Shown here in pieces: positions 80 through 18,265 of a stretch of DNA of 64,000 bases. The stretch spans positions 1-64,000 of the forward strand of contig MCFE01000090.1 of assembly GCA_002104905.1 (NCBI GenBank), read 5' to 3'. Position 1 is the first letter of the stretch. Each line of letters begins with the position of its first letter. This DNA is from Basidiobolus meristosporus CBS 931.73. Taxonomy: Eukaryota; Fungi; Basidiobolomycota. The notes beneath the pieces were generated by a model. It did no database searches. It was not told the DNA's origin and worked only from the letters and a program-made list of their open reading frames with translations. A program made the translations under genes and the position numbers.

Positions 80-1440
80 ATTCCTCATCTACCACTTTTT
101 GCCACTAAGAGACACACATATGGGGAATTGGTGGAGTAAAAATATCAAAAGCTGCCTATATTGAACTCTCAGTTTCTGGGACTGGAATACTACCACTGCA
201 TTATGCGTTATTGCAGTAGAAGAAGAGAACATTTTTGTTTCAAGGCACATGATACGAATAGTGCTGAACACCGGCAACTGGAAAGCACATTGTGGATATT
301 TCTAACCAATACTCACTGACCAAATTCAGAGTCGATGGGTTGTCGGAACCTATTACTACACTCAGGGAACATTGAAACCATTGATCATGGGGTAATCAAC
401 CCTTTCGTAATTGTCAAGTATGACTGAAAGAACTGTACAGCCACCATTCATTAGCCAATCCTCGTTCGATCTAGATCCAAGTTGCTCTGAACCATATCTG
501 TACTTTATTAGCCAGCTAATGAAATACCCGTTCAGTCAGCTGTGCCAAATAAAGCAAAGTGATGAATCAGTCATGCCAAATGAAGCTAACCCCATTGCCT
601 GTCTTGAAGGTCACATAGGTTTTGACATAAGGGCCTCCGTTGTAATTGTAGTTGCTGGTGTACACCTCACCATCAGATTCAATCCTCTCAACCACTGCAA
701 CATGGCCATCACTGCCGACACCTTGATTCCCAGGCTGGATGACAATGATGGAGGGGGCTTTGGGCTGACTCGAAACTGCCCAGCCAGCAGTGTTTCTGGC
801 GGAGGAGGTCCAGGTTAGTGCATCACCCGACCATGCTACGATGATGGCCTGTCAGCTGTGCGTAGCGAGCATCGGCCCAGTCAGTGCACTGCCCATTGTT
901 GAACCGGAATTGCAGTGTACCCTTGGAGGAGGTAGTGCTCTGGCTATTGCTACCGCTACTACTGCTTCCATTGCTACCTGAGCTACCGATACCAGAGCTA
1001 TTCTCGTCCCCATTGCTCTTGCTATTTCCGTTTCCATTGCTGTAACTTTTGCTGCCGTATTGTAGTCTTTCCCATTACCATAGTTATTCGTACCACTCCC
1101 ATGCGAGTATTTGTCCTTCTTCATGAGTGTGTGAGCTTTAGCTGCATTGACAGCTGCTGCAAAATCAGGACTAGGTCGACTAACGTCGTGCAATGGCAGG
1201 GTATCCACCACAGTCGCAGTGAGGCAGAGCGCGAGAACCAGCAGGCAAAGGAATGAGTTCATTTTTGGAGTGTACTTATCCAGAAGTAGTAGTTGATGAT
1301 ATCCAACAACCAAAGTGCACGTATTTATACTGTGTTCTGGGGAAGGGATGCTGAGACCACCTTCATTACTCTCCTCTTTGCATATAGCCATATAGGCAGC
1401 AAGGACTCGTTCCATAGAGTCGGGAATGAAGAGCAATCAG
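80..1440. repeat. Diverged direct segmental duplication of about 5450-6870 (CHAP subtype 1 unit with both flanks)
   Basis: Flanks align (e.g. CATCTACCACTTTT near 85 and 5455; CCATAGAGT.GGGAATGAA.AGCAATCA near 1415-1440 and 6845-6870); 411-818 is near-identical to 5846-6244. Boundaries approximate. Confidence 0.85.
567..1262 (-). pseudogene. Secreted CHAP-domain protein, subtype 1, copy A (two 1-bp frameshifts: pseudogene or assembly indels)
   Basis: ATG at 1262 (MNSFLCLLVLALCLTATVV, signal peptide). Aligns to copy B through a G/N/S-rich linker and the CHAP core (FNNGQCTDWADARY...GHVAMVE...TSNYNY...SFIWHD, TGA at 567-569). Versus B there is a -1 at about 1058 (GACTACAAT-ACGGC) and a +1 at about 841 (CATCATCGTAGC vs CATCACGTAGC); the shifted frame stops at 852. 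Confidence 0.8.
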
Positions 1441-2520
1441 TATACACGGGCAAGAGTTCAGTGTTGGCGTGTTATATGATGAAAATAGATTTTCACCATA
1501 TCATACTCAGCTCATGTCTCGTCTCTCAATAATCTCTCATCAGGCATATAGGGCATCTGAGTAAACAATGTTCCAGTGTAATCATATCATTTCTGTTAGC
1601 AGTCTACTCAGGCGTCACACACCCCACATTCAATATAAGTTTCCTGATCCTTACCCCTATCCCCAACCATCACATTAGAACTGCTCTTCTAATCAATACT
1701 CCCATTTTTGGTTCCACCACTTCCACTCAACCCTGTTCTTAGTGATGCATCTTGCATTCGTTGAATCTAACTCTTATACCAATACGGCTTTTTATTTTCA
1801 GATTTCGGCGTTTGGAGATTGCTACATAAATTGACCAGCTACCCTTAGGGCCCGATTTTAATTGCCCGATATACGAATGTATTTGAATGAAGTGAGTAGC
1901 AGAGTCTTCAGAAGACCAAGATTGAAACATTACATCGGTCCCCCTAATCTACAGATTAATGATCTTTCGTTAGCAAAACCCGAGACTTTTGACTCTAAAA
2001 ATACGCTATTGGTAGATCTTTGAAGCCTGAATTTGAATTCACCATGTTGGTAGGGTCTCGACTTCAACTGATTACCGAGAAAAAAAATCACTTTTTAAAG
2101 TGCAACATATCCAGATATCGTGAGGTTCCCACAATGTTCCGTCAAGAAAAAGCACAATTAGTACTATAATCAAGAATATCAACGACTGTGGACTACTTGG
2201 AGCGATCCTGAATCGAAATCGGAAATACAAGCACGTGCCTTCCAAGCCTAATGTGGTAGTAAATTAGGAATAAGGACATTCTATAACTAGATGAATTTTC
2301 ATATATGGCAGGATCCTTGATACATGCTTCATTCTGAAAGGTAAGATACGAATCGACTGGATTAAAGGTTTGAGAAGTTTTCTACTCAGCTTAGACTCAA
2401 TGGTAGGAATCGAATCCCAAATGCCACTTGTTATGGATAGCCCCGTTAAATCCTGGCCCAGAATAGTAAGCAGACTGTGGCTTGTTGCTTGTTGGATTGA
2501 TCTTCCTCAGATCTCCTCAG

Positions 2521-2530
2521 CTATATATTA
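2521..2530 (+). promoter_or_regulatory. Putative TATA element of CHAP copy C (same motif near 4335 for copy D)
   Basis: CTATATATTA about 55-60 bp upstream of the ATG, conserved in both subtype-2 copies; AATAAA at about 3169-3180 downstream. Confidence 0.4.
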
Positions 2531-2582
2531 CGAGCTTCGTGACCATGGATTCAACACGTTCACAACAACTCAATAGTACAAT

Positions 2583-3128
2583 ATGGTCAAAATCTCTTCC
2601 TTTCTTTCGGGTGCTGTTGTCGCTGCCGTTGGCCTTCTAAGTCTGGCTGCCCAAGCGCTTCCCACCTCGACCACTCCAAGCACCACCTCAGGCTCATCAA
2701 ACGCTACCGAGACATCTGCATCACATGCTCAGCTCGCTGGTCTATCCGAGCTCTACAATGCATGCTCACTGCAATTCCGCTTCGATAACGGCCAATGCAC
2801 CGATTGGGCAGATGCTCGTTATTACCAGCTCACCTGTCACCACACTCAGTGGTGGGGGAATGCCAAGACGTGGCCGGCAAGCGCTGAAAACACCGAAGGC
2901 TGGGTTGTATCCAGCGAGCCACGAGTTCCTTCGATCATTGCCATCCAGCCTGGATATCAGGGTTGCGACTCCTATGGCCATGTCGCGGTCGTCGAGAGCA
3001 TCAACGACGACGGAAGTGTCTACACCAGCAACTGGAACTACGTTGAGAATGGACGCGGCGGTCCCTACATCACCACATATGTTAACTTCTGGCCTGGCGA
3101 AGGAGTGTCCTTCATCTGGTATGAATAG
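2583..3128 (+). CDS. Secreted CHAP-domain cysteine amidase/peptidase, subtype 2, copy C (intact, 181 aa)
   Basis: Signal peptide MVKISSFLSGAVVAAVGLLSLAAQA; S/T-rich linker with NAT sequon; catalytic Cys motif GQCTDWA; His motif YGHVAVVE; SNWNY; intronless. Confidence 0.9.
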   Translation: MVKISSFLSGAVVAAVGLLSLAAQALPTSTTPSTTSGSSNATETSASHAQLAGLSELYNACSLQFRFDNGQCTDWADARYYQLTCHHTQWWGNAKTWPASAENTEGWVVSSEPRVPSIIAIQPGYQGCDSYGHVAVVESINDDGSVYTSNWNYVENGRGGPYITTYVNFWPGEGVSFIWYE

Positions 3129-4394
3129 GAGAAGAGGTCCAGCTCAGACACCCAATAGAAAATACCCCAATAAATAAATAAGTGAAACATCGCTCTATCT
3201 CGTTTTCCAGTGTGACCTACCTTCTATGCGTTTATCACGTTTGACTGAAGTATCATAACAACGAGAAGTAGGATTGTTGCTCGGAGATGCATATAGCACC
3301 GGCTAGTCATAATGATTATTTGTGATTGTTACCAGATTTATATCAAGATAATTAACTCGGTCTTTGCATGTAGGAGACGAGTTATAGATATCTAATGTTT
3401 ACTTACTTTTAGCAGCAGGAATTCTGGAGTTTGCAACAAAGGTCCCTCTAGTCTTAACATGTACGAGTAAAAGATGTATACACTTTAGATGGTAAAGACG
3501 TAGTGCTTGTATTATGGTCTGATATTACGGGTTTACTATGTAACAATTGCAGTTTCATGGCTGCTTCAAATTATGTCTACCGTATGGGTCAACATACACA
3601 TTAGCCAGCAATGTAATGTAGTACATGGAATCACACTTGTTCCGAAACCGATACAAACATATGGTTCTAACATGGAGGATTCTATCAAAGCTTAATCAAC
3701 ACAAAACAATTGGCTAAAGATAATGATAAAACGAAAGTAACCGATCAAAAAAATCCGCCATCTCCGCATCTATTTTAGATGAAAGTCAATAATCTCAGGA
3801 TCTGATATTCCACGATCTACGTAGGCCTATATTGACAGAGTCTAGACTTGAATTCGATATTCCGTGTTCGCACTACGGTAGGCGGGGTCCTTGAATCTTC
3901 GAGAATTGGACACTCTACTAACAAGAAACCTTCCTGATCTTCTAAAACTAAAGCAAAAAACTGATTCTGCGCACTGAGATGATAGACTAATCCCTAATCG
4001 GAAATGTAGATCTAGGGGCGTGCCAAATCGACTTCTATGACCAAACATGGCAGTAGTCAAACTTCATCGAAGATTACTAAACCAATCTGTGACCAACTTG
4101 CGGTCTCCATATATGGTGAATAACTTGAAGTACAATTCGATCTGCAAAGGTAAGCAAGATCCAGATTGATTGGATTGGGGGTTTTGGAAATTTCTTACTG
4201 AGCTTTAACTCGATGGTAGGAATCGAATTCCAAATGCCACTTGTTATGGCTAGCCCAGTTAAATCCTAGCCTGGAATAGTGAGCGCGATGTGATCTGTTA
4301 TTCGTTGGATCGACCTTCCTCAGATCTCCTCAGCTATATATTACGAGCTTCGTGACATGGATTCAGCACGTTCACAACAACCCAATAGTACAAT

Positions 4395-4939
4395 ATGGTC
4401 AAAATCTCTTCCTTTCTTTCGGGCGCTGTTGTCGCTGCCGTTGGCCTTCTAAACCTGGCTGTCCAAGCGCTTCCCACCTCGACCACTCCAAGCACCACCT
4501 CAGGCTCATCAAACGCTACCGAGACATCTGCATCACATGCTCAGCTCGCTGGTCTATCCGAGCTCTACAATGCATGCTCACTGCAATTCCGCTTCGATAA
4601 CGGCCAATGCACCGATTGGGCAGATGCTCGTTATTACCAGCTCACCTGTCACCACACTCAGTGGTGGGGGAATGCCAAGACGTGGCCGGCAAGCGCTGAA
4701 AACACCGAAGGCTGGGTTGTATCCAGCGAGCCACGAGTTCCTTCGATCATTGCCATCCAGCCTGGATATCAGGGTTGCGACTCCTATGGCCACGTCGCGG
4801 TCGTCGAGAGCATCAACGACGACGGAAGTGTCTACACCAGCAACTGGAACTACGTTGAGAATGGACGCGGCGGTCCTACATCACCACATATGTTAACTTC
4901 TGGCCCGGCGAAGGAGTCTCCTTCATCTGGTATGAATAG
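4395..4939 (+). pseudogene. CHAP subtype 2, copy D (1-bp deletion near the C-terminus)
   Basis: Near-identical to copy C; GGTCCTAC at about 4872-4879 vs GGTCCCTAC in C shifts the last about 20 codons. The restored frame ends at TAG 4937-4939. The homopolymer context suggests a possible sequencing error. Confidence 0.8.
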
Positions 4940-5992
4940 GAGAAGAGGTCCAGCTCAGATACCCGATAGAAAATACCCCGATAAATAAACGATTGAAATA
5001 TCATTTCAGCTCGGTTTTCCAAGTTAACCTCTGCTGCATTTACTGGCTAACCCCAGTGGTATGTATGCATAGAATTTTGAGCAATACAGCTTATGAATTT
5101 TCATTTCAAGATGATACTCAAGGCCTTCTCTTTACACACGCATCCCTTGGATGCATGAAGTGAGAATATTTGCTCTGCTAGTGAGCCACATATCTATTTG
5201 TCCATAGGTTTTCCTCAATCGAGAGGGTTTGTGCGGCAGGTAAATTGATTAATTTGGTCGTAAGGAGCTTTCTTTTCAACATTTTCAATGTTGATGCATC
5301 CAGATTTCGATCACTGTAGTATTGCAATATTTTCTGCCTATCTAATGTCCACCCATTTGGAGCCCGGAATTTCGATCTGTCAAATGGCTTCGGAAAGTAA
5401 TGTATCCACTTTATAAATCAAGCCAAAATGTTAAGATCCATCAACACTCCATCTACCACTTTTCGGCATCAAGAGACACTCACGTGGGGAATTGGTGAAG
5501 TAAAAATATTTACAACTGCCAATATTGAACCGGCAGCCCTCGGTTTATGAGATTAGCATGCTACCACTGCATTATGCAATAAGCAGAAGGTGAAGTCACT
5601 TATATTTCAAGGGACACGATACGATTTATACTGAACATCATTAGCAGGAAAGCGGACAATAGGTATTGCTAACCACCACTTACTTGAATGAACCCTTTCC
5701 AAGCAACTTGGTGGCTTAGTCCCAGTTTAGTCTGGATCGTGGCTTTTGTGTTGTGTCGATGGTTTCTCCGAGCCCACTACCAGACACCTAGGGAATATTG
5801 AAACCATCCATCACGGGACAATCAGCATATACATAATTACCAAGCATGATTGAATCAACTGCACAATCACCATTCATTAGCCAATCTTCGTTCGATCTGG
5901 ATCCAGGTTGCTCTGAACCATATCTGTACTTTATTAGCCAGCTAATGAAATACCCGTTCAGTCAGCTGTGCCAAATAAAGCAAAGTGATGAA

Positions 5993-6713
5993 TCAGTCAT
6001 GCCAAATGAAGCTAACCCCATTGCCTGTCTTGAAGGTCACATAGGTTTTGACATAAGGGCCTCCGTTGTAATTGTAGTTGCTGGTGTACACCTCACCATC
6101 AGATTCAATCCTCTCAACCATTGCAACATGGCCATCACTGCCGACACCTTGATTCCCAGGCTGGATGACAATGACGGAGGGGACTTTGGGCTGACTCGAA
6201 ACCGTCCAGCCAGCAGCATTTCTGGCGGAGGAGGTCCAGGTTAGTGCATCACCCGACCATGCTACGTGATGGCCTGACAGCTGTGCGTAGCGAGCATCGG
6301 CCCAGTCAGTGCACTGCCCATTGTTGAATCGAAATTGCAGTGTACCCTTGGAGGAGACAGTGCTCTGGCTATTGCTGCCACTACTGCTGCTCCCATCGCT
6401 ACTTGAGCTTCCGGTACTGTAGCTATCACCGTTCCCATTGCTACTATTGTAATTCTTTCCATTGTTTTTGCTATTTCCGCTTCCAGCCCTGTTGCTTTTG
6501 CTGCCGTTGTTGTAGTCTTTCCCATTACCATAGTTATTCATACCACTCCCATGCGAGTATTTACCCTTCTTCAGGAGTGTGTGAGCCTCAATTGCACCAC
6601 CTGGCTCCTACGAGATCCGGACTAGATCGATTGACATCGTGCAGCGGTAGGTTACCCACCACAATCGCAGTGAGGCAGAGTGTGAGAACCAGCAGGCAAA
6701 GGAATGAGACCAT
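5993..6713 (-). pseudogene. CHAP subtype 1, copy B (1-bp insertion after the signal peptide; CHAP domain itself intact)
   Basis: ATG at 6713 (MVSFLCLLVLTLCLTAIVV); +1 base at about 6600 (GCC AGGT GGT vs GCT GTC AAT in A) gives TGA. Downstream ORF 5993-6541 has the G/N/S linker, GQCTDWADARY, GHVAMVE and TSNYNY. Confidence 0.8.
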
Positions 6714-7888: not shown

Positions 7889-8848
7889 ATGGGTCCTCCT
7901 GTGACTATTACCGCGCCGTTGCATTTGCTCTTTGAGTCGAACATCACCATGTCGCTCACAGCTATGTGTACGGTTGTATTTATCAACAACCTCTACCACT
8001 CGATACGGATGCTTCCCAACAATCAGAAATTAATCTACTACCTTTGCTTCATCCAGGCATTGTTTGGGGCATTCACCAACATCATCGCCGTGGTGTTCTT
8101 CTTTTACTTTGACCTTTTATGCGGCCCACGTATCTATCTTGCTGCTACACTGAATCTGTTTGCTACCACATGCATCGAAATCATTTTACTACTGAAGGCG
8201 TACTATGGCTCCGACAGATCAAAGATAATCTTTGGCATAGGTGCAGTGCTGCAGGTTGCCAGAGTAACAGTTGGTGCAGTCAACATAATTTACACGTCGT
8301 ACATGGTGACCGAACTGCATGGCGTGCGAAGGAAAAATCAACATGCTGACAGGCATGTTGGTGGTGATCTTTGAATTGGTCCTCAACGCCTACTTTTCCG
8401 TGCTATTTCTGAGCTCCATGTATCGTCAATGGAAGTTCGTCAAGACTCGGCTTTATGCAGCTTTACTCAAAGACGGTACCATCTATTCGTTTGCCACTGC
8501 CTTTACCAGCGTTGCGATGATTATTCTGGCCAGTGCAGGAGTCTTAGGCGACAACTCACCAATTCTGTTCAATGTCAGCTGTAAGTTGGATGTCTCATTT
8601 GGACTCCCGAAACCCATCTAATTGATTCATGTATAGGGGCCGTGGCATCCAAATTAATTGTGGAACAGCTAATTAATACTCACAAACTGAAACGCGATGG
8701 GGTCACCAACGACAAAATTACTACCAAGCGCACAAACAACACTGGAGCTACTTCTACGGAAAGAAGTGGCTCAACCAATCCAGAATTCTCCTTCTCGGAT
8801 GGGCAAAAGAAAGACGAGTTTACAATCAAAGTGGTCACAAGAGACTAA
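7889..8848 (+). CDS. Fungal 7-transmembrane GPCR-like protein (one intron 8581-8636; +1 frameshift near 8321)
   Basis: Seven hydrophobic segments across ORFs 7877-8374, 8319-8621 and 8642-8848; Cys at the start of TM3 (CGPR) and in ECL2 (ACEG); GTAAGT...TAG intron restores FNVSWAVASKLIVEQL; S/T-rich tail. Confidence 0.65.
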
Positions 8849-9174
8849 CTCAATAGTTGCAACTTGCCATAGATTTTCAATGTAATGCATGTCACTAATA
8901 TATATACGCAGAATCACCTGTCAATAAATTCAACGAAAGAAACCTGCCATGTGTACAGTGTATATATTTACTCGGTATGAGGGCTTCAAGAAATGGGCTC
9001 ATTTTTATAAAGTATTATGCTCCGGTATATATGGTATTAGAATGACTGCATAACAGAATTGAAATCGATATGTTGCACAAGTGAAGGGAGGGGAGGGGAT
9101 AGCTCTGGAATCTATCACCTGATTAGCAGGATTGTATGTATAGGTATATCTCGCATCTCGCATCTCGCATTGCT

Positions 9175-12100
9175 TCACATGTTCCCGAATGGTTTCCCTG
9201 CTCTCAACGGCCCTTTACCCATCTTCTCCTTACATGAATAATGCACAACCACACCGTTAGGAAATACGGCGAAAACGCTGTTCCCAATACGCTTCAAACA
9301 ATGTGGACACATCCGGTCCTCGGTGATTTTGACATATCTGGATCTGTAATGAACTAGCTTTTCCTGCACCTGGACACCTTCGGCCCTCAGCAGGCTGCTG
9401 ACGACATGGTTCATTCTTGAGTTTTTGTGAAGCTCCCGCAGGTATTTCTCGAAATATTTGTTCAAATTCTCCAGCTTTGTATCTTCGGGAAGCATGCTGA
9501 GTACTTCCGATACATCTATGGACGATCCGTAACTTGCTAAAAGTGCGATGGCTGGCTCGATCAGTGGGGAGTCTTCTGGGTTGGATGGCTTCAAGTAGAT
9601 CCTCAACAATGTAACAAATAACTCGGGTGTCCAGTGCTCTTTGCAATAGCTCTCTGCTTTGGCAAAGTCGCCCAACTTATGGACGTAGATGTTGAGTGCT
9701 TGCTCATGCAGCCCCATTCGGCTCAATAAGATTGCCCTCTCTTCATAGAAGCCATCTGTGGTCAGCTGCCCCAGGATTTTCTCGGCTTTGTAAAAGGTGG
9801 ACTCGGTCAGGAACTTGATTAGCTTCTGGCGAGTAGAGTTATGATCTAGATTGGGTCAGTTAAATGGACAAATCATGGGATGGCGTCTTCTTTGCTGTAC
9901 CTTCCGTGACGGGCTCGACGATTTGGTCGTTTTCCGCGTTCATGACATTGTTTAAATAAAGGATGATGAGGGTGTTGTGAAATTCCGGGTTGTTATCCTC
10001 AAGTTCATGGATGATATGCTCCAGATAAGGAATGCATAGATCGGGTGCGTAATGGTCGAGATGCTCGACTACTCTGGCTCTGGGCTGTGCAACGACCTCC
10101 GACATATCCTCAGTAAATATCTGAACAGAGGGTCATTAGAACAGGTTAAGTTTGAGTGAGCATGGGCTGCTTACGGAAAGCCCCAATTCTGGGTCGGTTT
10201 GTAGAACCCATGGCGAGAACTCCAGAACCAAATCGAAATCATCCACACCGAGCTTTTGGAGGTAGATAACAGTGGATGAGCAGCCAGATAACGGATTTCC
10301 CGAAGAGCGGCCCAACCTTAAATGAATGAGTCAGTCTGACGAGCCAGATGTGAGCGGGTCAAAAGAGGTGTTACTTAGTTAAGAGCTGGAGTGATTTTCT
10401 GTGCAGTCCTTTACCCCTGTAAAGGTCAACCAATTCCCTATATTTCTAAAAGACGGGAAATGATAAATATATGAGTCCCGGTGCGGATTGCCAACCATAT
10501 TACCTTATGCTGGAGCAGTAGGGTTTCGCTCTCCGCAACATTACAATGATTGCTAACTCTCAGCAACGGCCCAACCAATGCATCATTACTGTTAAGGTAC
10601 GCCTTCAGCAACGTGGTGTCGATCAACTGTGCAAGCAGGGGAAGGCTGATGGAGGATTTTGCGACAACGCTTTCAACGTTGGTGGACAGGGAAGACAAGG
10701 TAGCCGAGGATCCGACTCGTTTGATCGACTGCGTCTCGCCATTAGAACTCAACGTTTTTGACACTTTCCGTCTCCAGTCAGTCAAGAAGCCAACCAATGC
10801 CTCAATGGCATCTTTCAAATTGCCGCCCTCTAATAAACCATCTGGACTTAGAAACGAGAGCTTACTGTGGACTGACAAGATTGAGCGTACCAAGGGTTGA
10901 GCCTCCATCCTGCTCATCAGCTTTGCTCAGAGTACCCGCGATCACAGGAGGATACAATGAAATCACTTCCACTGGGTCAGCATCCAATTCTTGGAACATG
11001 CTTAGCGCCTGCTCATATCCACCGTTACGGAACAGGAAATGCGCGTAAAGGTTGCGAATGCGCGTTAGTTGGGCATTCTAAAGAACATAGAGTTAGGGCC
11101 GTTAGACGGGAAGCATCTCCGGGTGCGTCAATGACAGACCTTTTCTTCAGGGAGGATTTTTTCGATCTGATCCAACAAACTTAGAGCCTCCTCGAACTCA
11201 TTAACCTCGACCAGCTGGTCAATCTGACATAGAAAGTTCAGTAATAATCCGCAGAACAAGCCCGTCCACCTCTCCTACCTGCTTCATGAAATCCAGTGGG
11301 ATAAGTCGCCACACATGGTCAGAGCTTGCGATATAGATCACTTTACCCTGAGTCATCATTTGTGGGTTGGTAAGCTCAATGTTTTGAACTAGCCTTTGGG
11401 TTCCGATGTTCCGGATTTCTACGTGTTTCGACAGAATTGCGATGGCGTAAGGGAATGAATACCCTGGAGAATGAATAGGTGTTGGTCCAGGAAAGCAAAG
11501 TCTACGTCACGTCATGAAAGAGTACCAAGTTCTTCAGGAGCTGCCGACCAGCTGATGCCAGCTTTTCGAGTGGGTGTTCCATCGGGGCCGATGAAAATGC
11601 TCACATCTTTGGTGAAAAAGTTCCAATTAGACTGGAAACAACCGATTAAGCGAAACATCTGCTATTTACTATCTTTCTCCACTAAAAGCTCGTCGTTGGG
11701 TAACCGTACGATCAGGGGCTTTCCGGCATTCAAAATCATCCCCATAGCGCCGATTGCCATAGAGCCCAGCTCGCTCAAGCTGCTTCCCAGGCCGGAACCC
11801 TCACCGGCATTTGCAAACAATTCGGTTACTTTGCCACTCGGCAAATCCAAAATCGCATATCCTTTTGTGAAGGACGAGCACAACTTTGTACTCGAGGCCC
11901 AAGTGATTTTCCGGACTCTGTCTGGAATGTTGAATTCCTACGATATTGAAAGTTGTCTTTGATATGCTGACGGTTGGCCAATCGTTCGTATTGAACTACC
12001 TTGGTCTCCACTAGCTCCATATCTTGCCACGTGTATACTACCAACTTCTTCTTTACCGCCACGCATAAGCGTGTGACGATGGCAGGAATGCCCTCCTCAA

Positions 12101-12634
12101 TTTCAATGCTGCTACTCACTGCAAATAAGTATGCATTCTTGATCTTGGGCAATTGTGGGCGGATGGTGAGCGTCTGAGTGTCGTACATTGAGACAACATT
12201 ATCTAACGTCGTCGGGATTAGACTTGGCCTGGGAGCAAAACCAGTGGAGCATTACCTGATAAGGACACCAGCACATCCATTTCTTTGATGTATTCTATTT
12301 GTTCAATGGGTTTTTTTGAGAAGTTCTTCTTGGATTCGATAAGCGTTACCGACAAAGGCTCCTCATCTAGGTATTTTCAGTGAATGAAGCTCGAATGGTA
12401 CTTAGATGCTTCGATATATCGACCAACCTGTAGGTTCCCTAACTTCATAAACTAGCAATACACCTGTGGAAGTACCGACAAATAGCCTATCACCTAAAAG
12501 CCAACACCCAGAGGTAAGTAAGAAACGCTGGCGCCACTCAACAAAACAGAAGCGAAACAACTGTAGGCTAGCACGGACTCAATCTTCAGTGGCAGATCCT
12601 CAACCACTGGGATCACCTCGAATGCTTGGTGCAT
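9175..12634 (-). CDS. VPS39: Vam6/Vps39 HOPS subunit (multi-exon)
   Basis: N-term MHQAFEVIPVVEDLPLKIESVLAY-DRLFVGTSTG (CNH domain); IDTTLLKAY...LLRVSNHC; C-terminal zinc finger CPHCLKRIGNSVFAVFPNGVVVHYSC. Confidence 0.93.
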
Positions 12635-12871
12635 TGTGTCGGTAGAGATTAAGTTGACTTTAGAAGTATACTGGAGCAAAATTGCTTGCTTAATACATGA
12701 TGGTGACGACAATGGGTGGCTAACACCCAAAATTCACCAGAACTCCAGATTCGGGTGATTTAATCATATAACCAGCATAATTACGCTTAATTACGCTTGG
12801 GCATGAGTGAAATAACGAACATGGTTTATTGGGAGGTATTTTGATCACTCTATCATAGGATATTGGGCTAG

Positions 12872-12959
12872 GGTATATGATCAAGAGGGTGTTCAAACCT
12901 TGGTATATGATCAAGAGGGTGTTCAAACCTTGGTATATGATCAAGAGGGTGTTCAAACC
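12872..12959. repeat. Perfect 30-bp tandem repeat x3 (GGTATATGATCAAGAGGGTGTTCAAACCTT)
   Basis: Units at 12872, 12902 and 12932 read directly; no spacers. Confidence 0.95.
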
Positions 12960-13058
12960 AAAGCGCCCTCAAGGTCGGCAATTACTGAGAAACTGGCGAA
13001 AAAATATGATACATGGAGAATGAAGCGAACGAACAAAACGGAAATGCTGATGTGAGGA

Positions 13059-14566
13059 TCAACGCATACTACGCTGCATGAATTCCAGCTCCTTGGGGTA
13101 GTCTCTGAATTGCCGCTGTATCCCCTTTGGGCAGTTGGCTCTAATCCAGGGATGTCTCTTGGCCTCTAAGAGCGGCATACGCTCGTTGGGATTGTGGACC
13201 AACAGCTGCAATGATGATTAATGGAAGCTCCGTGATGTTTACGGCGAACTCAACTTACTTTACGAATGAAGTCGCCCGCTTGAGGAGACAGGTAGTCGGG
13301 GATTTTCAGGTCGACTTTGGAAATCCTTTTGTACGTCGCCTTAATACTAGACAGGTCCTCGAACGGGGGGTTGCCAACCAGGAACTCATAGGTCAAGACA
13401 CCCAGACTCCACAGATCCACGTGGATGCTATGGTCACGGCCCTCCACCATTTCCGGGGGAAGGTAATCCAAAGTACCACACAGGGTGGTTCGTCTAGAAC
13501 GAGACTAAGCTCAGTCATTGTGCAAGCAAGAGACAAAAACAAAGCATACCGATTTGTTTGATTATGGTGGACTGACCAGCCGAAATCTGCCAGCTTGACT
13601 TGGTTGTCCATCGTCAGCAACAGATTCTCGGGCTTGATATCTCGATGAATGACATGCTTCGAATGAAGATAATGGAGGGCATCTGCGATTTGGCCAATGT
13701 ACTAAATCACTCGTTAGAGGAGGGTCGCATCTAAGAACGTGGAGGCGAATACTAACCGAAGCGGCGGTTGGCTCATCGTAATGCGTTATTTTCCGTAGCT
13801 CCTTGTACAATTCACCTTTGGATGCGAACTCGATGATGAGGTAGATCTTGGTCTCATCGAAGAAGTACCCGAACAGCCGAAGGATATTTGGATGTCTAAA
13901 GATGCTCAGTCAGTTGCGTGATGATAGGTCAGCGTGGAAAGAACGAACCTCAAATGGGTCTGGATCTCGATCTCTCTGCGAACCTGCTTTTCAAGCTGGG
14001 ATTCGATCAGTTCGGATTTGTGAAGGACCTTCAAGGCCACGACGTAATTATTCATCTTGGCTCTGGCCAGGTAAACTCGTCCGAATTTGCCTCTACCAAG
14101 GCTCTTTCCGATTTGGAAATCGTCGAGACTCCAGCTGGTGGGTCGGAGTAGTCTATGGAAGCCTTTAGTACTCGCTCTTCCTTGAATCCAGCTTGGATAG
14201 GTGGCCTACCTTTCATCCACTCCGAGGGTGTTTTTTTCTCTATCACCGGATTGAAGTCGTTTAGAGAATGCTGTGGGCTTAGGATTGACCTCTGGGGGTG
14301 GCATTAGCTGCGCATCGGTGAATTTGGCCTGGACCACAGTACTACTGACTGAGGTGGTGGGGGCTTTCTTCATTAGGCGATTGGCCAAAGTATTATTCAG
14401 CATGGCCACCTTCGTTAAGCCAGGGTTTTGAGCTCCCTTTCGAGGTGGATTTTGAACAGCCACTGGCTCTTTGCTTTGGGCTTTAGTTCTATTCTATAAC
14501 AAAACAGTAAGTTTAAATAAGTATGGTTGAGCATAAGCGTACATGGCCTCGTAGTTATTGTACCAT
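13059..14566 (-). CDS. IPL1: Aurora kinase (Ipl1/Ark1), multi-exon
   Basis: [48 protein letters not shown]-term HPWI. The start (ATG-only first exon at 14564-14566) is inferred. Confidence 0.92.
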
Positions 14567-14992
14567 TGACTTTCTCTCCTTATCGTATGGCTCACCGCTT
14601 CGTAGCTTAGGGTCAACCTTTTTTACGATATTCATATTTATTGCAGTGACTATCAAGCCCGCTTTCAATTTCACACAAACAATGGGAATTGATTATTTGA
14701 TCGTATTAGCTTCTTTTTACCAAAACAATAAACAAATCTTTCCGTCAACCAATGAGGTGCGCCCCATCATAGGGAAAAGTTTAGAATCCAATGATCTTAA
14801 TCAACCATGGAGGCTCTGTTACATACCTCTCGCTGGGCTATCAGGTTGTTCGAGGAAATAATCGTTTGAATCTCAGTAAATTTATTGATGGATTTAGAGG
14901 AATTAAATGCTATGAACAATAATATGAAAAAGGTTCGAGATTAATTCAGTTCGGTGTGAATAATTGTCCATTAAAGTGATACAGTGATTAAA

Positions 14993-16294
14993 TTAGATCT
15001 CTAATTGCTTTGGCTTCTCCCACGAAAACTCCTCGCGTCCGAAGTGGCCATAGCAGGCGGTCTTGGAGTAGATGGGCTTGAACAGGTTCAGCTCCTTGAC
15101 GATCACCCCTGGTCTCAGGTCCCAGTTCTTCTTGATGATCTCCAACAGCTCAAGGTTGCTCTTGACTCCGGTTCCATAGGTGTCGACGAAGATAGATAGC
15201 GGCTCGGCAACGCCAATGGCATAGGAGAGCTGGACCAGGCAGCGACGTGCAAGCTTGGCTGCCACCAAGGACTTGGCGATCCAGCGAGCAGTGTAGGCTG
15301 CTGAGCGATCGACCTTGGACCAGTCCTTGCCCGAGAAGGCTCCGCCTCCGTGGGCTCCCCAGCCACCATAGGTGTCAACAATGATCTTGCGTCCGGTGAG
15401 TCCGGCATCGCCCTGAGGTCCACCGATGATGAACTTGCCTGAGGGATTCAAGTGGTAGACTGTTCTCTCGTCGAGGAGCTCGGCAGGGATCACCGAGGCA
15501 ATCACCTTCTCCTTGAGCTCACGACGAATCGTCTCGTTGTCGACATCGGCCGAGTGCTGGGTGGAGATGACCACAGTGTCCACACGGAGCGGGAGCATGG
15601 CTCCGTTCTCGTTCTTGTACTCGACTGTGACCTGGGTCTTGGAGTCTGGGAGAAGCCATGGGAGAGTGCCGTCACGACGGAGCTGGCTCATCTTGTAGTT
15701 GAGCTTGTGCGAGAGTGTCACGGTCAATGGCATCAGCTCGGGGGTCTCGTCAGTGGCGTATCCAAACATGATTCCCTGATCTCCGGCGCCAGTATCCTCG
15801 ATGGCCTGGCTCACTTGCACGAGGCCCTGGGCAATGTCAGGGGACTGTTGCTCAATGGCAACCAACACGTTGCAGGTCTTGTAGTCGAAGCCCTTCTCGG
15901 AGTGATCATAGCCGATTCCTCGGATGGTCTCTCTGATCACCTTCTGGTAGTCAATCTGGGCCTTGGTGGTGATCTCGCCGAACACCATGATCATTCCGGT
16001 CTTGGCGGCTGTCTCGCAGGCGACCTTGGAGAGGGGGTCTTGGGCAAGGCAAGCATCGAGGATGGCATCGGAGATTTGATCGCAGATTTTGTCTGTAGTG
16101 TGTAGAAGGACTGGTTAGCACGGCAGCCAAGCTGTTGGAGTAGAGGTGCAGGCAATAGTAACAGTAATGGTGAAATGGAATGAGGTGGAAGTGGAGGCAT
16201 CAAGAGTACTCGGAGAGAGATACTAACCAGGGTGGCCTTCGCCAACGGACTCAGATGTGAATAGGAAGGTTTCTTGCTCAGCTAGGAAAACCAT
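14993..16294 (-). CDS. SAM1: S-adenosylmethionine synthetase, copy 1 (one 135-nt intron)
   Basis: [22 protein letters not shown]|DKICDQISD; [12 protein letters not shown]; GGGAFSGKD; YGHFGR. Confidence 0.97.
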
Positions 16295-16858
16295 GACTTT
16301 GTAATAATTTTCGAAGCACGCAGTAGCGGTATTTATGTATGCAATGGTCTCTGTGTGATGATCATCGGTATTGAGCCCTAATGATAAAGAATACAGGATT
16401 GCGAACTCACCAGAGCCAATTAGAAGCAGATAGCATGTTGCAACTTTCATATGAAACTTTGCCAAATTAGGATTAAGTTAGGCAATCTGTCCCGGCTGTT
16501 GTAATTTTGCGAACATGCGATAGATTCTATCTGCCATCACGCCATTCGTACACAGTTTGGCATATACCTCGGGCCCACATTCACACGATAGTGCAGAAGT
16601 CTGAGCGGTGATATATTCTGAATGATAACGATCTAATCATGTAGGGTACACGAACAACGTGGAATTTGTCTATGTTATGTGATAGTTCATTTTAAATGAA
16701 TAACCATAAAGTGTGGAAACACAAGTCATGGTGTAAATTTCCAATTGGCCTGCTTTGGGTGAGGACTTCCGATACTCTACCCCACTTGCCCTATGAGCGA
16801 TTGATGATAAAAAGGGCCTCGAAGTAGTCTCATTATCTATATCAAGCGTAGCAGTAAA

Positions 16859-18163
16859 ATGACCAACTTTTCGGCTGAACAAGAAACTTTCCTATTCACA
16901 TCTGAGTCCGTTGGCGAAGGCCACCCTGGTTAGTATCTCTCTCCGAGTACTCTTGATGCCTCCACTTCCACCTCATTCCATTTCACCATTACTGTTACTA
17001 TTGCCTGCACCTCTACTCCAACAGCTTGGCTGCCGTGCTAACCAGTCCTTCTACACACTACAGACAAAATCTGCGATCAAATCTCCGATGCCATCCTCGA
17101 TGCTTGCCTTGCCCAAGACCCCCTCTCCAAGGTCGCCTGCGAGACAGCCGCCAAGACCGGAATGATCATGGTGTTCGGCGAGATCACCACCAAGGCCCAG
17201 ATTGACTACCAGAAGGTGATCAGAGAGACCATCCGAGGAATCGGCTATGATCACTCCGAGAAGGGCTTCGACTACAAGACCTGCAACGTGTTGGTTGCCA
17301 TTGAGCAACAGTCCCCTGACATTGCCCAGGGCCTCGTGCAAGTGAGCCAGGCCATCGAGGATACTGGCGCCGGAGATCAGGGAATCATGTTTGGATACGC
17401 CACTGACGAGACCCCCGAGCTGATGCCATTGACCGTGACACTCTCGCACAAGCTCAACTACAAGATGAGCCAGCTCCGTCGTGACGGCACTCTCCCATGG
17501 CTTCTCCCAGACTCCAAGACCCAGGTCACAGTCGAGTACAAGAACGAGAACGGAGCCATGCTCCCGCTCCGTGTGGACACTGTGGTCATCTCCACCCAGC
17601 ACTCGGCCGATGTCGACAACGAGACGATTCGTCGTGAGCTCAAGGAGAAGGTGATTGCCTCGGTGATCCCTGCCGAGCTCCTCGACGAGAGAACAGTCTA
17701 CCACTTGAATCCCTCAGGCAAGTTCATCATCGGTGGACCTCAGGGCGATGCCGGACTCACTGGACGCAAGATCATTGTTGACACCTATGGTGGCTGGGGA
17801 GCTCACGGAGGTGGAGCCTTCTCGGGCAAGGACTGGTCCAAGGTCGATCGCTCGGCAGCCTACACTGCTCGCTGGATCGCAAAGTCCTTGGTGGCAGCCA
17901 AGCTTGCACGTCGCTGCCTGGTCCAGCTCTCCTATGCCATTGGCGTTGCCGAGCCGCTATCTATCTTCGTCGACACCTATGGAACCGGAGTCAAGAGCAA
18001 CCTTGAGTTGTTGGAGATCATCAAGAAGAACTGGGACCTGAGACCAGGGGTGATCGTCAAGGAGCTGAACCTGTTCAAGCCCATCTACTCCAAGACCGCC
18101 TGCTATGGCCACTTCGGACGCGAGGAGTTTTCGTGGGAGAAGCCAAAGCAATTAGAGATCTAA
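16859..18163 (+). CDS. SAM2: S-adenosylmethionine synthetase, copy 2 (intron 16929-17063)
   Basis: [23 protein letters not shown]|DK...; protein identical to copy 1 beyond the first few residues. Confidence 0.97.
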
Positions 18164-18265
18164 TTTAATCACTGTATCACTTTAATGGACAATTATTCAC
18201 GCTGAACTGAAACATCATTTGTTATATAAACCACTTTCTGAAAGAAGAACTTGTGAAAAACAATG

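Follow-up and report, generated by a model that had tools for sequence, protein, structure and literature searches.

The window analyzed here is the whole stretch of 64,000 nucleotides (nt) at positions 1-64000 of contig MCFE01000090.1 (176,536 nt) from the fungus Basidiobolus meristosporus CBS 931.73 (assembly accession number, GCA_002104905.1). In the first 7 kilobases (kb) of this contig, inside 567-6713, lie four coding copies of a gene for a protein with a CHAP domain (PF05257; MEROPS family C51), designated A to D. The coordinates given for them in the initial annotation, a short reading of the same DNA that preceded this analysis, were confirmed, and the copies are as follows (aa, amino acids).

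567-1262, minus strand: copy A (A-type, 231-aa class), encoded at full length, with the frame broken by two 1-nt indels
2583-3128, plus strand: copy B (B-type, 181 aa), an uninterrupted frame for a signal peptide, a linker, and a CHAP domain
4395-4988, plus strand: copy C (B-type), a tandem duplicate of B with a 3' frameshift, the frame extending to 197 aa
5993-6713, minus strand: copy D (A-type, the most diverged), with the signal-peptide frame split from the CHAP frame

B and C, as tandem duplicates, have a spacing of 1812 nt, and A and D are direct duplicates with a spacing of ~5.43 kb. The repeat unit is composed of two B-type genes and one A-type gene, in the order B-type, B-type, A-type, and has a length of ~5.1-5.4 kb; the array in the window corresponds to 1⅓ units, A being the last gene of one unit, and B, C, and D one full unit. 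Eukaryote-like TATA and AATAAA signals had been reported for the array and were located, with a TATA-like box of B at 2522-2529 and TATAAA of A at 1324-1329 (~55-62 nt 5' of the ATGs), and AATAAA at 3169-3174 (B) and 504-509 (A), ~40-58 nt past the stops. The start of the contig was searched for a telomere repeat, and none was found. The same contig carries a second array.

8220-17149 of locus L001 (MCFE01000090.1:153421-173966), ~156.9-165.7 kb of the record, strand order + + - + + -: second array of six CHAP genes, x1 to x6

The genes x1 to x6 are all uninterrupted frames and make up two copies of the three-gene unit. This array, which has ~95% DNA identity to 357-4989 of the window, sits between the gene for elongation factor 3 (EF3) and a reverse-transcriptase gene; the two arrays are mutually inverted and lie ~150 kb apart at opposite ends of MCFE01000090.1. 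The public model of x6 begins at an internal Met, and an upstream ATG restores the full signal peptide. The local amplification proposed at the outset is thus borne out by a three-gene unit that is repeated in two arrays of one contig.

A separate pair of CHAP genes was observed in locus L084 (MCFE01000319.1:1-12106) at 1393-2106 and 3456-4004, the first gene being 1.4 kb from the contig start, and CHAP arrays seem to be placed repeatedly at assembly breaks. The 237-aa member from L084 and its kin (P0014, P0015, and P0033) have in common an N-terminal Cys-rich motif, CP-x-GNGLYCG, for which no matching Pfam family was found and which may be a small unrecognized binding module.

The frame breaks in A, C, and D were read off by comparison with the intact paralogs x1 to x6. 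In A, one nucleotide is missing near 1059 (codon 69) and one is added near 841 (codon 141), with an in-frame stop at 852-854 between these positions, so that the start and the Cys motif are in different frames; besides the two indels, only 7 codons differ between A and intact x6 (L001:16454-17149). In C, a 1-nt deletion in the codon for Pro161 (~4875) replaces the last 20 residues, the stop equivalent to that of the paralogs would fall at 4939, and 6 codons differ from B. In D, a 1-nt insertion is found near 6602 (codon 38); the signal-peptide frame (6713-6591) runs into a stop at 6588-6590, and the 182-aa CHAP frame (5993-6541), although open, lacks a signal peptide. The linker of D has an extra in-frame insertion of 24 nt, and comparison of D with x3 gave 34 nonsynonymous versus 23 synonymous codon changes. 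The public gene models span the frame breaks with putative introns of 41-129 nt, which the intact paralogs do not have. Two candidate introns were rejected because the homologous stretch is coding in the intact paralogs, namely the 41-nt intron in the public model of C (167 aa), with which a conserved strand would also be lost, and a 43-nt GT..AG intron formally joining the signal peptide of D to its CHAP frame. The array had been described as four intact genes, and this description has to be withdrawn; only B is uninterrupted, and A, C, and D each have single-base frameshifts. Judged from the assembled sequence, B is the only one of the four copies predicted to be usable for certain. The others are either decaying duplicates or products of consensus or base-calling errors near the contig end, and, given how few codon differences separate A from x6 (7) and C from B (6), the breaks represent either very recent decay or such errors.

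Pfam searches gave CHAP scores of 61.9, 61.5, and 58.6 bits for B, C, and D, respectively (cut-off, 26 bits), and no CHAP match for the frame of A from its ATG, owing to the frameshifts. B consists of a signal peptide (~1-25, ending in AQA before LP), an S/T-rich linker (26-57), and the CHAP domain (~58-181), with catalytic positions at Cys72, His133, and Asn150/Asn152. The motifs GQCTDWA, GHVAxVE, and SNxNY were found in the window copies; in A, they are encoded in a frame other than that of the start codon. Cys72, His133, and Asn152 (B numbering) are invariant in an 18-sequence alignment of fungal and bacterial proteins, and both the Cys and the His are present in every fungal member checked apart from P0027. 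In P0027 (Basidiobolus ranarum K7432_012594), the catalytic His is replaced by Tyr (DGYVAVVE), and this protein may be an inactive paralog. A wall-binding module was sought in the window copies and the longer paralogs, where PF05257 alone was significant, even at E values up to 1; neither LysM nor SH3b was detected, in agreement with the earlier statement.

The structure of the B domain was predicted by AlphaFold2 with an alignment as the papain-like alpha+beta fold typical of CHAP proteins (predicted local distance difference test score (pLDDT), 88.6; predicted template modeling score (pTM), 0.83), and this run replaced a single-sequence run that gave a pLDDT of 46.5. A Foldseek search of the PDB returned CHAP domains as all of the top 24 matches, the best being the peptidoglycan-cutting domains of the phi812 hub, Staphylococcus aureus 5T1Q, 2K3A, and LysK CHAPK, with template modeling (TM) scores of 0.55-0.75, and sequence matches pointed to the same staphylococcal and phage set (E values of 1e-7 to 1e-5). 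By a crude hydropathy rule, a signal-peptide-like N-terminus was called in 33 of the 46 fungal members; B and the intact A-type paralogs are among these, with a site of the AQA|LP type. The ratio of nonsynonymous to synonymous substitution rates (dN/dS) was 0.05-0.15 when B-type genes were paired and 0.34-0.45 when A-type genes were; at these values, the CHAP genes are under purifying selection.

A word-indexed search yielded 35 Basidiobolus cluster representatives (90% identity clusters), comprising 18 named B. meristosporus proteins, copy D, and 16 B. ranarum proteins, and the B. meristosporus members are distributed over at least 12 contigs of 83-268 kb. An exhaustive search of representatives followed by cluster look-up added 3 further B. 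ranarum members, bringing that species to 19 diverged members, and the family thus has at least 18-19 diverged members per species in the two Basidiobolus species. Outside this genus, P0149, P0169, and P0177 from Entomophthora muscae and P0111 from Massospora cicadina are proteins of the fungal clade. E. muscae has at least 8 members, some of them in tandem, as indicated by the consecutive locus tags DSO57_1023045-47, and word-indexed protein searches with Entomophthora queries returned E. muscae paralogs only. P0188 is encoded on a 9-kb metagenome contig (Ga0466724_40530, locus L079, Joint Genome Institute 3300042649) carrying two Entomophthorales-type CHAP genes and an F-box/leucine-rich repeat gene; this contig looks eukaryotic and is probably from an unsampled fungus of an Entomophthorales-type group. 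All five proteins named here are built alike, with a hydrophobic N-terminus followed by a low-complexity linker and, at the C-terminus, the CHAP domain.

The best non-fungal matches were all bacterial, with 49-60% identity over the domain, and those with names were from Thermogemmatispora and Ktedonobacteraceae. When 185,579 prokaryotic species genomes were scanned with two motif patterns and the best 75 loci were kept, 75 of the 75 were from Chloroflexota (43-60% identity), and every locus named below the phylum was from Ktedonobacteria (Ktedonobacter, Thermogemmatispora, Dictyobacter, Tengunoibacter, Thermosporothrix, Ktedonospora, and Ktedonosporobacter). A tree of 87 rows and 119 columns was constructed with IQ-TREE under LG+C20+F+G4 by the posterior mean site frequency (PMSF) method and rooted on two distant CHAP proteins; this mixture-model tree replaced a FastTree result in which long branches met. 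The 26 rows that are fungal or eukaryote-like all fall into a single clade (100/98), which splits into Basidiobolus (99/89) and Entomophthorales with the metagenome rows (99/97), and this clade lies inside a larger one (86/94), the remainder of which is only 20 Ktedonobacteria rows and three unlabeled rows. The bacterial relatives carry a transmembrane segment ahead of the CHAP domain, where the fungal proteins have the signal-peptide-like N-terminus. The GC content and the GC content at third codon positions (GC3) gave no donor signal, GC3 of the CHAP genes being 0.53-0.58 and close to the host coding range.

The bacterial origin proposed in the initial annotation is accordingly supported by both the nearest relatives and the tree. 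Phylogeny had also been expected to tell whether the fungal sequences nest within one bacterial clade, and here the grouping with Ktedonobacteria was recovered, while an approximately unbiased (AU) test retained the monophyly of Ktedonobacteria with the fungi as sister (p = 0.215); the fungal proteins are therefore either nested in the Ktedonobacteria group or sister to it. The idea of a recent event specific to this locus was not sustained, as the family is present on at least 12 contigs, is common to Entomophthora and Massospora, and splits as the fungi do. For the last two reasons, the most likely event appears to be one old acquisition at the base of Entomophthoromycotina, in which the shared ancestor of Basidiobolus and Entomophthorales received the gene from a bacterium resembling Ktedonobacteria, and vertical descent with lineage-specific tandem expansion would be the simplest history after it.

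Among the next bacterial neighbors, P0089 is an N-terminal CHAP protein encoded directly before an SLT lytic transglycosylase (L080:3620-4947 and L081:6001-7328). Its setting is a dense one-strand array of small genes and looks like a phage or a conjugative element.

On the inner side of the array, the window continues with the following genes.

7889-8848, plus strand: flanking fungal gene of 270 aa, a gene call on MCFE01000090.1
9175-12280, minus strand: intron-bearing Vps39-like gene (820 aa in 3106 nt) with the domains CNH, Vps39_1, Clathrin, and zf-Vps39_C

The array is adjoined by intron-bearing fungal genes, i.e., the Vps39-like gene and then genes for a protein kinase and S-adenosylmethionine synthetase, and the earlier claim of contiguity with intron-rich fungal genes is thereby confirmed. 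In the same part of the window, 14945-16282 and 16874-18211 form an inverted repeat of 1338 nt with 99% complementarity and arms 591 nt apart. Each arm contains the full coding stretch of S-adenosylmethionine synthetase, as 373-aa frames at 14996-16114 (minus strand) and 17042-18160 (plus strand), and the repeat either arose very recently, by head-to-head duplication of the gene, or is an artefact of assembly.

Taken together, we consider it probable that the family consists of secreted CHAP cysteine amidases or peptidases which originated in a Ktedonobacteria-like bacterium, were acquired by the ancestor of Entomophthoromycotina, were multiplied in tandem in Basidiobolus, and act on bacterial peptidoglycan. 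The products would be secreted single-domain peptidoglycan amidases or endopeptidases, the secretion, substrate, and ecological role being inferred. Their reading as wall hydrolases is based on the conservation of Cys and His, the low dN/dS, the signal peptides, and the confident CHAP fold. In the mechanism proposed, a eukaryotic signal peptide and a short low-complexity linker would have taken the place of the bacterial membrane anchor, and a mature protein of ~125-155 residues would be set free outside the hypha. Its Cys-His-Asn center (Cys72, His133, and Asn150/152 in B) would cleave an amide bond of bacterial peptidoglycan, and neighboring bacteria in the gut, dung, soil, or an insect cadaver might be lysed or weakened, for competition or for food.

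Several points weigh against this interpretation. The CHAP superfamily includes amidases that do not act on walls, e.g., glutathionylspermidine amidase, so that the wall substrate is a prediction; the fungal proteins have no wall-binding module, and three of the four window copies are interrupted by frameshifts. The hydropathy rule used for the signal peptides is crude, the motif patterns of the genome scan favor the CHAP subfamily of the fungal genes, and the AU test leaves a position nested within Ktedonobacteria insecure. The search of representatives covered the best 150 of 969 matches, and further eukaryotic holders of the family may be missed.

Bacterial contamination or a chimeric assembly, by which the CHAP genes would not truly be in the fungal chromosome, could be suspected from the position of the array within 7 kb of a contig end, from the start of another CHAP pair 1.4 kb from a contig end, and from the lack of introns in the CHAP genes. 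This explanation is given practically no credence, for the genes are contiguous with those for Vps39, the kinase, and S-adenosylmethionine synthetase here and with fungal EF3 at the sister array, and members of the family occur on at least 12 contigs, in an independent assembly of B. ranarum, in E. muscae, and in Massospora. Moreover, the membrane anchor of the bacterial proteins has given way to eukaryotic-type signal peptides, no bacterial sequence exceeds 60% identity to the fungal clade, GC3 is near the host coding range, and the read coverage of Basidiobolus transfer candidates in general was checked in a previous study (PMC7466969). Integration in a fungal chromosome, as originally claimed, is consequently accepted on the basis of the Vps39 and EF3 flanks and of the distribution over at least 12 contigs and four fungal species. 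Basidiobolus and Entomophthorales could instead have received the family independently, in at least two transfers from related bacteria, a scenario compatible with the many bacterial acquisitions known for Basidiobolus (PMC7466969) and with the long branches that part the two fungal subclades; we regard it as improbable, because the joint fungal clade (100/98), which excludes all sampled bacterial sequences, makes it less parsimonious than a single transfer, and all members have in common the derived build in which a signal peptide and a low-complexity linker precede the CHAP domain at the C-terminus.

The number of working enzymes at the locus is a matter on which opinion is evenly balanced. 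A, C, and D may be true pseudogenes after a recent tandem duplication, in which case the locus would be mostly a graveyard, supplying a single working enzyme instead of an arsenal of four. The four single-base indels over three copies, none of which is in a long homopolymer (CCC at most), the intactness of x1 to x6 in the second array, and the divergence of D as the most changed copy argue for decay, but the closeness of A to x6 in spite of two compensating indels, and likewise that of C to B, also fits consensus errors of long reads near a contig end. As for the substrate, the secreted enzymes might have a target other than the walls of bacteria, such as proteins of the host or of insects, small molecules with other amide links, or fragments of peptidoglycan whose cleavage would blunt immune sensing by the host and not serve to kill bacteria. 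The E. coli glutathionylspermidine amidase is among the weak structural matches, the superfamily holds non-wall amidases, a wall-binding domain is missing, and the family is kept in obligate insect pathogens; nevertheless, the closest relatives in sequence and structure are staphylococcal and phage wall hydrolases and the membrane-anchored CHAP proteins of Ktedonobacteria, and we consider such a target unlikely.

A broader proposal is put forward tentatively, with a likelihood somewhat short of even, that a soil bacterium resembling Ktedonobacteria gave, in one ancient gift, what became a core and repeatedly amplified secreted bacteriolytic family of the whole subphylum, controlling the bacteria of gut, dung, and cadaver. 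If true, the family would count as the first CHAP-type lysin system in fungi, and Entomophthoromycotina would gain a dated transfer marker; Entomophthora and Massospora, behavior-manipulating pathogens of insects, would be among the users of the system in the subphylum.

The usual view is that fungi combat bacteria by means of small molecules. A secreted family of bacterial-type wall hydrolases, large and conserved, would add an enzymatic weapon or a feeding tool to the fungal antibacterial repertoire, and, since this lineage inhabits vertebrate guts and insect bodies, the family bears on the shaping of microbiomes by these fungi. In the gut communities of herptiles, Basidiobolus has been suggested to act as a bridge (PMC12400927, PMC10964425). 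As small single-domain proteins without a binding module, the enzymes should be easy to express and assay and are possibly useful as lytic enzymes. The occurrence of the family in both Basidiobolus and Entomophthorales is also a discrete character supporting their common ancestry, and a Chloroflexota donor joins the list of transfers into early-diverging fungi.

According to the initial annotation, such a system is not known to have been characterized in fungi, and indeed no paper describing the family was found, although genome-wide transfer into Basidiobolus (PMC7466969) and a CHAP family of an oomycete (PMC3681718) have been published. Tabima et al. (2020) gave 806 candidate bacterial transfers in the B. 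meristosporus genome, mostly intronless and of host-like composition, and the main text of their paper contains no mention of CHAP or peptidoglycan (PMC7466969). CHAP is not listed in the text of Ciach et al. (2024) or in the consulted part of its tables (PMC11291939), nor is it mentioned in the genome paper of E. muscae, and a literature search gave no mention of CHAP in papers on Basidiobolus or Entomophthorales.

Among known systems, the membrane-anchored CHAP proteins of Ktedonobacteria (Thermogemmatispora, Ktedonobacter, and Dictyobacter; labeled 'CHAP domain-containing protein' or 'surface antigen') are on the nearest branch of the tree and resemble the fungal proteins in the C-terminal CHAP domain (48-60% identity), with the same GQCT(Y/D)WA, GHVAVVE, and SNWN motifs. 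They are, however, proteins of 265-400 aa that have their N-terminus in the cytoplasm and contain a transmembrane segment, whereas the fungal proteins (165-320 aa) have a cleavable-looking signal peptide and an S/T/N/G-rich linker and, unlike the bacterial ones, are encoded in a eukaryotic gene context and in tandem arrays. The staphylococcal SsaA-like proteins and phage CHAP lysins (2K3A, 2LRJ, 5T1Q, phi812 hub 9EUM, and LysK CHAPK 4CSH) have the same fold and the same Cys and His positions but are only 20-32% identical to the fungal proteins, and many of them contain LysM, SH3b, or amidase modules or belong to phage baseplates, in contrast to the single-domain fungal proteins.

For the oomycete Saprolegnia parasitica, Jiang et al. 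(2013, PMC3681718) described a CHAP family of 7 duplicated genes that is predicted to be secreted; they attributed it to bacterial transfer and took it for a candidate virulence factor. It is like the fungal family in its filamentous eukaryotic holder, predicted secretion, proposed bacterial source, and duplication, and differs in the eukaryotic lineage. Saprolegnia sequences were not among the best 150 of 969 representatives, no direct test having been made, and the oomycete family is probably a separate acquisition. The dae amidases of ticks and mites, on which Chou and co-workers are said to have reported in 2015, are likewise wall hydrolases taken from bacteria. Other bacterial wall hydrolases gained by eukaryotes are the GH25 lysozymes (PMC4241558) and the NlpC/P60 proteins of Trichomonas (PMC6299479). 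All three follow the same logic as the fungal CHAP family, in that a bacterial hydrolase was acquired, supplied with a secretion signal, and kept under selection among bacteria. They belong to other enzyme families, and their bacteriolysis has been proven biochemically, whereas such an activity is predicted for the fungal CHAP proteins; the fungal family is, on the other hand, far more expanded than any of them, with its at least 18-19 diverged members per Basidiobolus genome.

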